Sequence record: NC_070952.1 | DNA: 64,000 nucleotides | Reading direction: 5' to 3' (one strand) | In this document: piece by piece, positions 13,923-19,277 of the stretch | How the letters are laid out: each line of letters starts with the position of its first letter | How positions within the stretch are numbered: position 1 is the first letter of the stretch | Notes under the pieces: model-generated | Database searches by the model: none | Told to the model about the DNA's origin: nothing | The model's input: the letters and a program-made list of their open reading frames with translations, nothing else | Position numbers and translations under genes: made by a program

Positions 13923-15377
13923 TTAGGTCATTGACTCCATAACAAGAGTACGGAGGACGATATAAAGCATCAGGCTGGTACGTAGAGACGTGATCTTAAT
14001 CTCGGTCTTAATACCGGTCATGGCTTTAACAAGCTCGTCACCGTTCGTTCTGAGCCGCAAGAGAAGGGCATTGGAAGATTTATTAGATGTGTACGCACCC
14101 CGCAACTTGAAGAACACATTCTTCAGGTCTTGATGTCGAATCGCATTTGTAGAAAGGTATTCAAACAAATGGGTGGTGACGTCATCAACAAACTCCCGAT
14201 ACTTTTCCCCTTTGGCATGAGCATACTGACTTGGGAAATCCCGAATGATCATTTCGAGTTTATCTTCATCGGTACGGGGAATTGCTTTAGCAGCATAAGT
14301 TACCAGTTCCTGTTTATAAAAACTATTCACATCCATTAAAACGTTGGAGATGTAGTTCTTATATTTGGTCTCGCGTTTCTGAACATCTTTAATATTCAGT
14401 TCGCCATCCATCACAGCCAGACCGGAATCGGTTTCTACCAGATCAGCGGAATCCTTAATCTCATACAGCACTTTGGTGTAATCGTTGACCACACCTTTGA
14501 GACGGGACTCCATATCGTTGACCATGTACACCAGTTTCTTATCGTTGTCCATCTTAGCGAAGGCATCGAAGTGAATACCGGTACGAGGATCAATGATAAA
14601 CTCACCACGGGCTTTAAACAGATCAGTCCATGAACCGTACTTCTTAATATCAAACTTCAAGGAGAGCTTGTTATAGGCCGTAATGGCCACACTTGGTTTT
14701 ACCAGGTAACCGAAGTAGTGGTTCATGATCGACGTCATGATACGGTAGTGGAATAACATCACCAGGTTTACTAACGCATCGTCTTTCACGTTCTTTGGAA
14801 GATCGGAAATATAGACACGGTGCATCAGATAAATGATGGACAAGTTAAAGGCTTCTGATGACACTTTAAAGTCTTTGTTAATCCATTTGGTTTTGATAAG
14901 CTCATCGCGCAGACGCACTTCATCCACATCAATAATGTCACGGAAGAAGGTCACACGGTCACCGGTCTTAAACAGCACGCGGTGAGTACCGAGATACGGG
15001 GAACCAAAGAACTCAGTGTGGTCATTGTCTTTGGTAGCAAACCCATAGACGTACCGACGAAGTGTTGATACCCAACGTTGGTTAATCACCAGATCATCGA
15101 CCAATCCATCAAAGATCTCTTTAACGGCATTGTCACGGTCGTAAACAAAGTTAGGAGCAAGTGCTTCCAGGCCAGCGATATATTCGATGTTGTCATTGAA
15201 TGACTCCATCCCACCGTAAGCATTGTACCGTATAACTGGAGCAAAAAGGGAAAGGGGATCTTTTCGGGTTTCCATCCCCGCGATAAGTTCGCGCAGCTCT
15301 TGTTCAGATAACTGGTTTTCTTCCTGATCGACTGACATCAAGCCAGTATAAATGTTACCGCTTAACAATGCAGTCAT
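13923..15377 (-). CDS. Conserved jumbo-phage protein, probably virion-associated
   Basis: 484-aa clean ORF in an operon downstream of a late-type promoter motif. Confidence 0.5.
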   Translation of the reverse strand: MTALLSGNIYTGLMSVDQEENQLSEQELRELIAGMETRKDPLSLFAPVIRYNAYGGMESFNDNIEYIAGLEALAPNFVYDRDNAVKEIFDGLVDDLVINQRWVSTLRRYVYGFATKDNDHTEFFGSPYLGTHRVLFKTGDRVTFFRDIIDVDEVRLRDELIKTKWINKDFKVSSEAFNLSIIYLMHRVYISDLPKNVKDDALVNLVMLFHYRIMTSIMNHYFGYLVKPSVAITAYNKLSLKFDIKKYGSWTDLFKARGEFIIDPRTGIHFDAFAKMDNDKKLVYMVNDMESRLKGVVNDYTKVLYEIKDSADLVETDSGLAVMDGELNIKDVQKRETKYKNYISNVLMDVNSFYKQELVTYAAKAIPRTDEDKLEMIIRDFPSQYAHAKGEKYREFVDDVTTHLFEYLSTNAIRHQDLKNVFFKLRGAYTSNKSSNALLLRLRTNGDELVKAMTGIKTEIKITSLRTSLMLYIVLRTLVMESMT

Positions 15378-16231
15378 TATCGTTTCCTTGGAACAATCAT
15401 TTTCAACTGGTCGGTTTTACCTTTGGCATCAGCATACGCCATATACTTCTTCATTCGTTCATTATAGAACTCTTTGAATTGCTGAGCAGCATCTGAGTAT
15501 CCTTGAATATCATCTTGGACATCATCAACGGTAACACCGAAACGAGAAACGGCTTCTTGCATCCCACGACGACAGGTCTTATAGATGTACGCTTTCACAC
15601 CCAGCTCAACCAACTCGGCAAACTTGTCGAACATCTTAGTGGGGACACCATTAAAGTTCTCGTCGTAAGACAAGATCACTTTAGCGATCATGTTAAACAT
15701 GGCAGAACCGGCATCACGAATAATAAAGGAGTTAGGTCCTACCATCGTGAAGCTGTTAAACGAACGGGTGACATTACTGTCCGTCAATCCGCTGATCAAT
15801 CGGTTCATGCTGTTGTTCATCGCACTGGCACCGCAACTGGCGTAGTTACCAAAGTTATAGCCGTTAGCGACAGCCCGGTTAATGTTACCAGGGTACACTT
15901 CCACCACTTCTAAGATACGACGACCACCTGTTAGGAAATCAGGGACGTTAACCCAAATGACTCCACCGGCCAGATTTTCAATCTGAGCACCAGAAAGATC
16001 GATGATCTCAGTTTGACCACCGGCCACCTGAAGCAATGGCGCTACCATCTTGTTAACGACTTTCTCACGGATACCTTGCTCAACAGTGAACGAGTCATTA
16101 CTTGGTCCCCAGATACCACCGTACCCATTGTTGGGATTATAGAAGGCAAGCTTCAATAAATAATCGGTAATGTCCGTGGGTCCATTTATTACATAGTCGA
16201 TAGCAAAATCGACTGGGTTGCTTAAACTCAT
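15377..16231 (-). CDS. Conserved jumbo-phage protein, probably virion-associated
   Basis: 284 aa, GAGGT RBS, CGTATG motif at 16281-16286 on the minus strand. Confidence 0.5.
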   Translation of the reverse strand: MSLSNPVDFAIDYVINGPTDITDYLLKLAFYNPNNGYGGIWGPSNDSFTVEQGIREKVVNKMVAPLLQVAGGQTEIIDLSGAQIENLAGGVIWVNVPDFLTGGRRILEVVEVYPGNINRAVANGYNFGNYASCGASAMNNSMNRLISGLTDSNVTRSFNSFTMVGPNSFIIRDAGSAMFNMIAKVILSYDENFNGVPTKMFDKFAELVELGVKAYIYKTCRRGMQEAVSRFGVTVDDVQDDIQGYSDAAQQFKEFYNERMKKYMAYADAKGKTDQLKMIVPRKR

Positions 16232-16346
16232 AGTTACCTCTATTTCGAAATAGTCTTATTACAAAGATAATAAGATGTCTCATACGTTATCCATCCTAGG
16301 ACACATATGGAACGAGCTCATATGATCAAAGAGAAAACCATGCATA

Positions 16347-16377
16347 AACCCCCACCCCCGTGAGGAGGTGGGGGGTT
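16347..16377 (-). terminator. GC-rich terminator-like hairpin
   Basis: AACCCCCACCCCC-GTGA-GGAGGTGGGGGGTT; stem is better on the minus strand (C-A becomes G-U), where T-rich sequence follows. Confidence 0.6.
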
Positions 16378-16379
16378 AA

Positions 16380-17375
16380 GATATTGTTACCCAGCTTTGG
16401 TGTTTATAAACACCCTAGAAAAGACTCTGCGTAAATAACACGGGTGCCCCCGATCCATTACGAAAATCCTTAATAGGCTGTCTACTCTACTGATTGACAA
16501 CTTCTCCCTTGGCATAGGGAGCGGACTGTTTATTATCCACAAGGTACCGCTTGCCAACGGGCCATAGGAATAATGCTGACGTTCCTCTAGAATCGTAGAT
16601 TGAGGCTGCTCCTCACAGTTAAGGCGGAGCGATTCATGACGGATCTGTCAGGAGTTGGAGTCTCCAGATAACAGAACCCGTTTCGTCACTTTGTTTGTCA
16701 TCGCGGACTCATCAGATGGTTACGATGCCCCCACCACGGGAGAAATCCACTCCATATCACGGAGAGCAGATAAGGTTGAGAATCTTGATATCACCCAGGA
16801 AGACTAGCAAGTCTCCTGCTTTAGCCGCCTTTGATGCAACGTAAATGTGCTCGGCGGTTACCCTACGGTTTTCGTTCAAGATTCTCAAGAGGTTGTACCA
16901 ATGGTTGAAACACTGTGAGCGCTTATCCGTCAGGTATAATTAAAGCTCTATCTGGATATCAGCCACTGGTACAAAGAGGTTAACGACGACGGATCATCGT
17001 TAAGGAAAGGGCGCAACTTACCCATTTCTAAAGATGTTGTATCCTAATGGTGTTCCCATGGAATGTTTCGGGTTCGTTTCCAATTACTCGGCGTTATCGC
17101 CAAAGTGTCCTGAGCTTGGACGAAGGGAACCTATTCTCTTTAGACGCGTTGCAATGATACAGTAATTTTCAAACTATTGTATCGCCCACCAAGAGCTACT
17201 TCAATTAGTGAACTTAAGTCACCGTTCACTCTTGGATTTAACCCAGCAGTGCAACCTGCCGAGCATTGCCCTCGTTACTACCCACACCTGGATAACAAGG
17301 GTCTTACAAACGAATATAACGGGGTGATGAAACCATGTCGGTCCGCAGACCGGCAATCAGTTACACTCGAATGAA
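16380..17375. ncRNA. Candidate ~1-kb structured non-coding RNA, family not recognised
   Basis: No credible ORF; many nested helices (13-bp 16776-16788/16876-16888; 16893-16908/16959-16974; 16822-16829/16853-16860; 17027-17034/17137-17144); less AT-rich than other intergenic spacers. Confidence 0.65.
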
Positions 17376-17388
17376 TTACATAATATAC

Positions 17389-18006
17389 TTATGATATATG
17401 AAATCCTGGGGTGTTAGGATCTTGGTCTTCACGAACAACGATTAGCTGTGTGTACCGAGTATCTAATTTTCCCGTGGTCGCATCAACTTTACGCCAACTT
17501 TTGGATGTGGAGCGTGTATCGAGATACCAAGTCACCGTAACCATTTCGTCTACGGGCTTGAGTACGTTAGGATTTTTACCTTCTCTAACGGTGATGAATT
17601 CCAAATGAGAATACGACATACCACAATCTCGAACATACGCCATTTTTAACGCGGTATCACCACAGATGTCCAGGCTAAACCATTTTGTTTCGCGTTTGTC
17701 GCGATACCACACTTTAAGTGGGGCTTGCTTATGGATAACTGTAATTGTCTTACCGTCATCGCCAATGATGTACGCTTCCTGATCTTCAAAAATAAAGATC
17801 GGTTTACCTCCGTTTTTAGACCAGTTTAATACGGCCACAACACCCGGTTCAGGAGTTTCCTCCTCATAACCAAATGTTCTTTTACCGAAACTACCGTTCA
17901 TATCAGGATGAACCACAGTAAAGTCAGCGCATAAGTGGACATAATCAGTATCTGTAGTTCCGTCTTCGCAAAGGGTAATTTTCTTCAGTAACATATTTTC
18001 TCTCAC
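17389..18006 (-). CDS. Hypothetical protein
   Basis: 205-aa ORF in the minus-strand cluster. Confidence 0.65.
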   Translation of the reverse strand: MRENMLLKKITLCEDGTTDTDYVHLCADFTVVHPDMNGSFGKRTFGYEEETPEPGVVAVLNWSKNGGKPIFIFEDQEAYIIGDDGKTITVIHKQAPLKVWYRDKRETKWFSLDICGDTALKMAYVRDCGMSYSHLEFITVREGKNPNVLKPVDEMVTVTWYLDTRSTSKSWRKVDATTGKLDTRYTQLIVVREDQDPNTPGFHIS

Positions 18007-19191: not shown

Positions 19192-19277
19192 TGGAGCCAA
19201 GTACAGGATTCGAACCTGTGAAGCCTTACGGCAGGGGATTTGCAATCCTCTCGCTTTGCCCACTCACGAAACTTGGC
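19192..19277 (-). tRNA. tRNA-Cys(GCA) with long variable arm, encoded CCA
   Basis: GCCAAGT TT CGTGAGTGGGCAAAGCG A GAGGA-TTGCAAA-TCCCC TGCCGTAAGGCTTC ACAGG-TTCGAAT-CCTGT ACTTGGC T CCA. Confidence 0.93.

Follow-up and report, generated by a model that had tools for sequence, protein, structure and literature searches.

A conserved structured non-coding RNA carrying a predicted hammerhead ribozyme in Erwinia phage AH04 and related jumbo phages

We analyzed the first 64 kb of the genome of Erwinia phage AH04 (MZ501267, 262,639 bp, genus Meadowvirus), a 262-kb jumbo phage of the phiKZ/OBP-like type. This stretch is referred to as the window, and its coordinates are those of the genome. A non-coding gap of 1,157 bp (16232-17388) separates AH04_12 (15377-16231, minus strand) from AH04_13 (17389-17994, minus strand), and all genes neighboring the gap lie on the minus strand. 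The virion protein AH04_12 (DUF7484) is conserved in 232 records of phiKZ-like phages. The GenBank record annotates no feature at all in the gap. As judged from sequence comparison, the gap encodes a conserved and highly structured non-coding RNA (ncRNA) of about 1 kb on the minus strand, within which lies a predicted type I hammerhead ribozyme. The RNA unit, single copy in the window, is delimited as follows:

16343..17388, minus strand: whole RNA unit, ~1.05 kb from a promoter-like box to a terminator, defined by nhmmer homology and covariation

A blastn search with the AH04 gap returned just one 60-nt match, a segment of the 5' domain shared with Kosakonia phage Kc263 and Serratia phage Yubaba. 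In both phages the match falls in an unannotated ~1.1-kb gap at the equivalent position, in a gene order that runs from thymidylate kinase through two virion-protein genes to the gap and then to tRNA and glutaredoxin genes. The equivalent gap is also present in N1M2, SXP01, OBP, Survivor and pEt-SU. Together with four IMG/VR contigs (L016-L019) and one metagenome contig (L099), these phages provide 12 homologs at the same genomic position, also poor in open reading frames (ORFs); they are the outcome of the BLASTN and nhmmer comparison with jumbo-phage genomes that a first-pass annotation of the window had proposed. With AH04, the family comprises 13 distinct sequences, all of them from OBP-like jumbo phages. 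Profile searches with nhmmer showed full-length homology of the AH04 RNA with Kc263, Yubaba, N1M2 and OBP, and homology with SXP01, Survivor and pEt-SU over the first ~700 profile positions (the 5' part) plus the terminator. A tRNA-Met gene abuts the 5' end of the RNA in Yubaba, N1M2, OBP and L099.

The distribution of the large RNA is narrow. It was not found in Aeromonas jumbo phages, EL or Miami, though the flanking genes are present. No copy was detected in the 185,579 bacterial and archaeal species genomes of GTDB, where only the hammerhead motif itself was matched, and scans of metagenomes and GTDB with the hammerhead pattern recovered just one further homolog of the large RNA (L099). 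The 16-mer GCATAAGCTGAATGCA occurred at 10 loci in IMG/VR, nine of which had no homology to the RNA and were taken as chance matches, the tenth being pEt-SU itself. A blastn search against 5,426 E. coli genomes found no similarity to the RNA and, therefore, no evident mimicry of a host RNA. The site upstream of the DUF7484 gene is, in addition, an insertion hotspot: an HNH endonuclease gene occupies it in Aeromonas phage pAEv1810 (L010:1384-2436), and two of the IMG/VR relatives of AH04 carry an extra opposite-strand ORF of 141-144 amino acids (aa) between the RNA and the structural gene (L016, 2026-2451; L019, 2012-2446).

The first-pass annotation had described the region as free of credible ORFs, and this was borne out. 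The longest ORF called mechanically within the AH04 gap had 65 aa, no ORF was conserved across the 13 homologous gaps, and substitutions between close pairs showed no 3-base periodicity (even phases, e.g., 32/32/31). Indels between close pairs were mostly not multiples of 3 (0 of 9 in Yubaba versus N1M2). ORFs have been annotated over the homologous RNA in two phages, namely N1M2_252 (170 aa, antisense; L004:1371-1883) and Kc263 QYN80068.1 (64 aa; L002:3357-3548). Neither is conserved in the closest relatives and both are, therefore, probably false gene calls; antisense ORFs of 170-177 aa in N1M2 and L016 were likewise missing from their closest relatives.

Covariation among the 13 sequences supported the central claim of the first-pass annotation, a highly structured ncRNA of ~1 kb. 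From the alignment of the family (A3), RNAalifold predicted 98 pairs, with compensatory changes in 53. Two of its pairings were replaced by hand: a GACG/CGUC pairing inside the hammerhead, which was a mis-pairing, and the spurious pair 71-72/1272-1273. The curated set of 26 helices and 135 pairs had 88.7% standard pairs in the 13 sequences, compared to 40-48% in slid controls (partners shifted by 1-3 columns). Compensatory, both-side changes were present in 85 of the curated pairs versus 27-34 in the slid controls, and none of 500 column shuffles reached the observed values. A crude all-against-all scan of column pairs was too noisy to use except for its four top helices. Read in the minus sense, the supported pairs included 151 G:U and 40 A:C combinations. 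Because G:U outnumber A:C to this extent, we assigned the RNA to the minus strand, in reversal of the slight lean to the plus strand reported at first. The U-tract of the terminator, the sense of the hammerhead and the neighboring genes are all minus, in agreement with this assignment. A comparison of folding energy with dinucleotide-shuffled controls had also been proposed, with a result no better than the shuffles counted against a structured RNA. The z-scores were -5.8 (minus) and -3.1 (plus) for 16638-17375 and -3.8 for 16345-16637 (minus). The region thus folds better than its shuffles, and the minus strand folds better than the plus.

One conserved element of the RNA has the layout of a hammerhead ribozyme, with the following parts:

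16634..16727, minus strand: type I hammerhead ribozyme, with an invariant core and covarying stems and pseudoknot
16722-16727 with 16699-16704, minus strand: pseudoknot between loop II and the 5' flank, 6 bp, 97% paired, 4/6 pairs compensatory
16716-16719 with 16634-16637, minus strand: stem I, 4/4 pairs compensatory
16709-16715, minus strand: core C3-A9, CUGAUGA, in which CUGA-N-GA is invariant in 13/13 (N = U, C or A)
16705-16708 with 16685-16688, minus strand: stem II, three invariant pairs and one covarying C-G/U-A pair
16682-16684, minus strand: G12-A13-A14, within the invariant GACGAAACGGG
16639-16681, minus strand: stem III hairpin with a conserved apical loop YUCCA, 13 pairs, 7 compensatory
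16638, minus strand: C17, a C in 13/13, with predicted cleavage between 16638 and 16637

The segment follows the type I topology, running from the 5' strand of stem I through the core, the stem II hairpin, GAAA, the stem III hairpin and the UC cleavage site to the 3' strand of stem I, so that stems II and III are capped and stem I is open. All 13 sequences have the blocks CUGAnGAGUC, GACGAAACGGG and CCGUC without variation, and A15.1 (16681) pairs with U16.1 (16639) as the first pair of stem III. Around this fixed core the helices vary in concert. Stem I, of 3-4 bp, occurs as CAU/AUG, CAG/CUG, CACC/GGUG and CUAU/AUAG, and the pseudoknot as CAUCG/CGAUG, CGUCG/CGACG, UGUCG/CGACA and GUUCG/CGAAC. 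In a dedicated alignment (A4), the 27 pairs of the hammerhead, pseudoknot included, were 90% paired versus 27-45% in slid controls; 16 had compensatory changes and no shuffle (0/500) did as well. A covariance model built from the hammerheads of the family (R1) scored 93.4 bits here, its single match in the window. Thus, all sequence hallmarks of a type I hammerhead are present in every homolog, and the predicted ribozyme adds a member to a known class. Pseudoknots of this kind are common in all three hammerhead types and needed for fast cleavage, and hammerheads that carry them are active (Perreault et al., 2011, PMC3088659). The first-pass annotation recognized no known family in the region; this holds for the large RNA, for which there is no Rfam match, and not for the hammerhead embedded at 16634-16727, which was missed. 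An apparent second hammerhead-like motif, GACGAAACGG, was rejected, as it falls within a probable inserted ORF in the 370 nt that SXP01 has in addition and lacks a CUGANGA partner.

Outside the hammerhead, the RNA is organized in domains. With RNA position r defined as 17392 minus the window coordinate, their order is the promoter-like box (r 4-20), 5' hairpins, GUAAGACC with P1-P3, P4 and P5, P6, the variable P8, P9, P11, the hammerhead (r 665-758), the 3' domain and the terminator. The corresponding features, from 5' to 3' in the RNA, are:

17189..17301, minus strand: 5' domain, with the invariant GUAAGACC followed by P1, P2 and P3 with its enclosed hairpin P3a
17294-17301/17269-17276 (P1) and 17257-17264/17241-17248 (P2 hairpin), minus strand: curated helices within the 5' domain
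17229-17235/17189-17195, minus strand: P3, CCAAGAG/CUCUUGG, enclosing hairpin P3a
17027..17183, minus strand: P4 hairpin (17156-17183) and P5 multibranch domain, curated helices 5-8
17140-17144/17027-17031, minus strand: P5 closing helix UCUAA/UUAGA, enclosing P5a (17107-17121) and P5c (17055-17072)
16894..17023, minus strand: P6 hairpin (17009-17023), hairpin 16980-17003 and P8 domain, curated helices 9-11
16967-16973/16894-16900, minus strand: P8 closing helix UGUACCA/UGGUACA, containing the conserved AUACCUGACG (ACCUGACG element) at 16925-16935
16778..16886, minus strand: P9 domain, with an 11-13 bp long-range helix (16876-16886/16778-16788), curated helices 12-14
16867-16869/16793-16795, 16825-16857 and 16799-16816, minus strand: interior of P9, a junction helix and two hairpins
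16728..16742, minus strand: P11 hairpin directly 5' of the hammerhead, 88.9% paired, 4/5 pairs compensatory
16376..16637, minus strand: 3' domain of ~260 nt, with D3a (16608-16630), D3c (16504-16521) and D3d (16409-16482)

Most of the helices drawn in the first-pass annotation were recovered, some with adjusted limits. The best-covarying of all is the long-range helix of P9 (up to 5 pair types per position), which had been described as a 13-bp helix (16776-16788/16876-16888). It corresponds to A3 columns 637-647/740-750, was 91.6% paired with 7/11 pairs compensatory, and was found independently by the column-pair scan. Of the hairpins that it was said to enclose, 16799-16816 is in the curated helix set and 16825-16857 is backed by partial column counts and the aligned rows. 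The P9 domain is flanked by the conserved strands GAACGAAA and GYGAUAUC. The helix first placed at 16893-16908/16959-16974 stands as 16894-16900/16967-16973, and the closing helix TCTAAAGA/TCTTTAGA of the multibranch domain (UCUAAAGA/UCUUUAGA; 17027-17031/17140-17144) is real. Hairpin 17337-17354 covaries as well, as read from the aligned rows and within the AH04 clade only. The pairing 17246-17252/17263-17269, on the other hand, was not the supported one and gives way to the overlapping 17241-17248/17257-17264 (6/7 pairs compensatory). Helices 1-4 of the 5' domain were 80-89% paired with 18/27 pairs compensatory, and alignment block 100-255, which covers this domain, had 20/33 compensatory pairs. 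The P4/P5 sub-domain is missing from contigs L016 and L017 and is, therefore, modular. Hairpin 16980-17003, flagged as strong by a hairpin scan, is specific to the AH04 clade. In the 3' domain, helices 21-24 were 96-100% paired (14/22 pairs compensatory) and the D3a loop GCCUUAACYGUGA is conserved. This domain is limited to AH04, L016-L019, Kc263, Yubaba, N1M2 and OBP; it is truncated in L099 and absent from the aligned homologs of SXP01, Survivor and pEt-SU.

The limits of the RNA carry candidate transcription signals:

17372..17388, minus strand: promoter-like box GTATATTATGTAATTCA, immediately following the AH04_13 stop codon, containing an ATATTAT core
16343..16375, minus strand: terminator-like hairpin CCCCCCACC...GGUGGGGG followed by UUUAUG, curated helices 25-26

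The box GTATATTATGTAATTCA is identical in four AH04-clade IMG/VR contigs, even where the sequence upstream differs, and it includes the minus-strand early-promoter core TATATTAT (17380-17387) of the first-pass annotation, which is thus present and conserved in the AH04 clade. Early promoters with an ATATTAT core have been predicted for OBP, N1M2 and phiKZ (PMC7058600). At the other end, the terminator-like hairpin that had been placed at 16347-16377, better on the minus strand, proved to be conserved. It has a G+C-rich stem of 9-11 bp and occurs in 12/13 homologs with compensatory changes. Its U-tract is present in the minus sense only and is short, below the T-run rule of a simple scan. In SXP01, Survivor and pEt-SU the terminator follows ~15-20 nt after the cleavage site. 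Between terminator and structural gene lies a conserved promoter-like spacer (GAUCWU..UUGUAAG, in an expanded version in AH04), which fits a separate promoter for the structural gene.

Given these features, we consider it probable that the element is a self-processing ncRNA, in which the hammerhead matures the 3' end of a large structured 5' RNA. In AH04 the RNA would start just downstream of the ATATTAT-type box (17372-17388), while in Yubaba, N1M2, OBP and L099 the tRNA cluster and the RNA are probably transcribed together; the end of the unit would be the terminator hairpin (16343-16375), which precedes the virion-protein gene AH04_12. The transcript is predicted to fold into at least 26 conserved helices in modular domains, with the hammerhead ~735 nt into the RNA and stabilized by the pseudoknot between loop II and the strand 5' of stem I. 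After transcription, the hammerhead would cut after C16638, the predicted site. The 5' product, of ~735 nt, would keep the ribozyme and end in a 2',3'-cyclic phosphate. The 3' product, with a 5'-OH, would be in AH04 a structured RNA of ~290 nt that includes the terminator, and in SXP01, Survivor and pEt-SU a short trailer with the terminator only. As stem I has only 3-4 bp, the cleavage products should separate. The short forms keep the hammerhead without the 3' domain, which ties the ribozyme to the 5' RNA rather than to the 3' domain; as it is present in every homolog, its likeliest role is the 3'-end maturation of the 5' RNA. The mature 5' RNA would be the functional molecule, presumably a stable structural or scaffold-type RNA of the tRNA/early region, comparable to GOLLD and ROOL. 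More tentatively, it is possible that the ~735-nt product represents a new, hammerhead-matured class of large ornate RNA specific to OBP-like jumbo phages, which would either assemble during infection into a higher-order RNA or ribonucleoprotein particle, like GOLLD and ROOL, or act as a giant sensor that gates cleavage. If the sensor reading is true, the element would be a natural allosteric hammerhead.

Several observations weigh against maturation of an ncRNA by a hammerhead at this site. The 13 sequences are one clade, five of them close relatives, and several helices rest on few independent changes. The box GTATATTATGTAATTCA did not match the extended OBP/N1M2 consensus within 3 mismatches, only the core being shared. 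Scans with Pfam and PHROGs revealed no RNA-related function in the proteins of neighboring genes, and thus no clue to a partner or function. Likewise, nothing in the results speaks for the packaged, scaffolding or nucleus-associated roles suggested in the first-pass annotation. The folding energy of the hammerhead segment alone was unremarkable (z = -0.11), so that the case for the ribozyme rests on the comparative evidence. The Rfam hammerhead models gave no match at the gathering threshold, the best being a partial Hammerhead_3 (15.7 versus 48.5 bits) and the other hammerhead models yielding no hit, and none of eight tested loci of the same subclass reached the threshold or gave any match at all. 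This shortfall is a limit of the curated models and not of the defining chemistry; a 2026 preprint describes the same limitation of Rfam models for other divergent hammerheads. Lastly, R1 found 57 matches in other phage and metagenome loci. The subclass CUGAnGAGUC...GACGAAACGGG comprises 49 other distinct copies (L020-L114 from IMG/VR and metagenomes, L115-L133 from GTDB genomes), with two to three copies per contig in L022, L050, L062 and L117. In about 27 of the 49, a Shine-Dalgarno sequence and start codon follow 7-35 nt downstream, a gene-start placement that for most other copies suggests a role in the processing of mRNA and not in the maturation of an ncRNA.

In line with this placement, the gap could instead be a cis-acting processing spacer in a long transcript reading from the tRNA/glutaredoxin genes in the direction of the virion-protein operon, with the hammerhead uncoupling the upstream RNA from the downstream mRNA. 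The structured part would then tune cleavage, as an allosteric platform acting via ACCUGACGG/CCGUCA, or protect the flanking RNAs. Hammerheads are abundant in phages, and the processing of long phage transcripts has been proposed as their role (Perreault et al., 2011, PMC3088659). The cleavage site lies ~90 nt from the structural gene in the short forms, and the AH04 clade has an 8-bp complement to the cleavage-site strand. This complement (TGACGGAT/ATCCGTCA; the upstream ACCUGACGG with the CCGUCA cleavage-site strand) was the pseudoknot of the first-pass annotation. The complementarity exists and could in principle inhibit the ribozyme, but only four AH04-clade sequences have all 8 bp; three others have 5-6 bp, and six of the 13 lack it. 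Covariation cannot test it, because one arm is the invariant cleavage site of the hammerhead, and the pseudoknot is thus left without comparative support. Moreover, a covarying terminator with a U-tract stands between hammerhead and structural gene in 12/13 homologs, the conserved promoter-like spacer follows it, and >700 nt of covarying structure far exceed the needs of known processing sites. We therefore regard a processing spacer as rather unlikely.

Maturation of the 5' RNA was also weighed against a selfish origin, in which the element is the remnant of an ORF-less mobile intron or ribozyme-bearing insertion at an intergenic hotspot and of no benefit to the phage. Hammerheads are frequent in selfish elements (PMC3088659), sub-domains have been gained and lost between relatives, and the site has received an HNH endonuclease gene in pAEv1810 and extra ORFs in L016 and L019. 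Against such an origin, compensatory changes maintain the structure across several genera, and there are no flanking split exons but a coding sequence (AH04) or tRNA (others) upstream and a complete DUF7484 gene downstream. Nor was there a match to group I or II introns even at E<=10, and the RNA is single copy and absent, except for the hammerhead motif, from the 185,579 species genomes. All this makes a selfish remnant quite improbable. An element acting at the DNA level (for instance, an origin of replication, a packaging site or a protein-binding array) would account for the richness of the region in inverted repeats and for a terminase gene ~5 kb away. Yet G:U is tolerated about four times as often as A:C on the minus strand, which DNA hairpins would not do, the invariant blocks are exactly the catalytic core of a hammerhead, and the helices are long-range and nested with a pseudoknot, so that we give this explanation very little weight. 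That the gap codes for small proteins or is a decayed gene is scarcely credible, as the ORFs called by annotators in the N1M2 and Kc263 gaps are not conserved in the closest relatives, substitutions lack 3-base periodicity and indels are mostly not multiples of three.

Large (>500 nt) structured ncRNAs of bacteria and phages fall, to our knowledge, into very few described classes, most of them without a settled function; we also know of no self-cleaving ribozyme in GOLLD or ROOL. The Rfam scan proposed in the first-pass annotation returned no family match to the large RNA: at gathering thresholds, only a tRNA-Cys was found in the whole 64-kb window. At E<=10 over 16100-17700 there were four weak matches, none near its own gathering score. 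One was the partial minus-strand Hammerhead_3, and the others (CRISPR-DR37, CcsR1 and a plus-strand alpha_tmRNA at 12.9 versus 50 bits) were taken as noise. With the same two scopes, the GOLLD, ROOL, OLE and group I/II intron models had no match, and the RNase P RNA and transfer-messenger RNA models no credible one. There is thus no homology to GOLLD and ROOL, to which the RNA was likened at first; tRNA genes do adjoin the RNA in relatives of AH04. Like those RNAs, studied by cryo-electron microscopy (PMC12286853), the AH04 RNA is very large, multi-domain, covarying, phage-encoded and without a conserved ORF. Unlike them, it is restricted to one clade of jumbo phages of Gammaproteobacteria and contains a predicted self-cleaving ribozyme.

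The predicted ribozyme shares with the phage hammerheads described before (PMC3088659) its catalytic core, three-stem layout, C17 site, phage origin and a 5-6 bp pseudoknot that joins loop II to the strand beside stem I. It differs in its long and conserved stem III hairpin, with the apical loop YUCCA, and in its position, for it is not at a gene start but in the 3' part of a structured RNA of ~1 kb, followed by a terminator or a further structured domain. The ncRNAs of phiKZ and other Pseudomonas phages that stem from 5'UTRs or 3'UTRs (untranslated regions) also arise from jumbo-phage transcripts by processing or termination, but are 80-210 nt long with no reported ribozyme (PMC10914365); the AH04 RNA exceeds them 5-10-fold in size, and it shows extensive covariation and predicted autocatalytic processing. 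No paper describing the AH04 element emerged when the literature on jumbo phages was searched for hammerheads or large structured RNAs. The large RNA around the hammerhead looks like a new family and, as far as our searches show, a hammerhead inside a conserved kilobase-sized RNA of one jumbo-phage clade has not been described. The setting is unusual for a hammerhead, which is here part of a large RNA, not next to the start of a gene or within a viroid-like repeat. The finding also corrects annotation, as several GenBank records place hypothetical proteins on the RNA and hammerheads of this subclass escape the Rfam models. The function of the RNA is directly testable, because it has a built-in, readily assayable activity (the predicted self-cleavage) and its phages can be cultured on laboratory hosts, for example Pseudomonas fluorescens for OBP, Klebsiella aerogenes for N1M2 and Erwinia billingiae for AH04.

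Klebsiella phage Miami, which lacks the AH04-type RNA, has a stretch of ~1.16 kb upstream of its DUF7484 gene (MT701590 220256-221418; L015:1335-2497) with only tiny, inconsistently annotated ORFs. The stretch is 89-95% conserved in BUCTxx100, YC1, KPN8 and VB_ZK_P1, and no similarity to the AH04 RNA could be detected; perhaps it is the counterpart, an analogous ncRNA locus, in another phiKZ-like lineage. A type I hammerhead of the subclass seen in AH04 (38.7 bits with R1) is also present in Miami, on the minus strand of the locus (L015:273-352), ~2 kb from the structural gene and downstream of CPT_Miami_267.

Elsewhere in the window, the OBP/N1M2 early-promoter consensus TTTYARRYAKATATTATY had nine matches within 3 mismatches versus 3.3 expected, which suggests that AH04 uses the same type of promoter. 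Those on the plus strand are:

21217, 28764, 38153, 47922, 53114, 57559 and 62705, plus strand: matches to TTTYARRYAKATATTATY with <=3 mismatches

The only tRNA gene that ARAGORN found in the window is a tRNA-Cys(GCA) at 19192-19277 (minus strand), at 86 nt unusually long for a tRNA-Cys; that of Shewanella phage SXP01 is similar in length (87 nt; L005:803-889). AH04_12 has a perfect palindrome, CTATTTCGAAATAG (16240-16253), directly 5' of its Shine-Dalgarno sequence and start codon. The palindrome is kept in L018, Yubaba and N1M2, not in Kc263, OBP, SXP01, Survivor or pEt-SU, and may be an operator or a translational hairpin.

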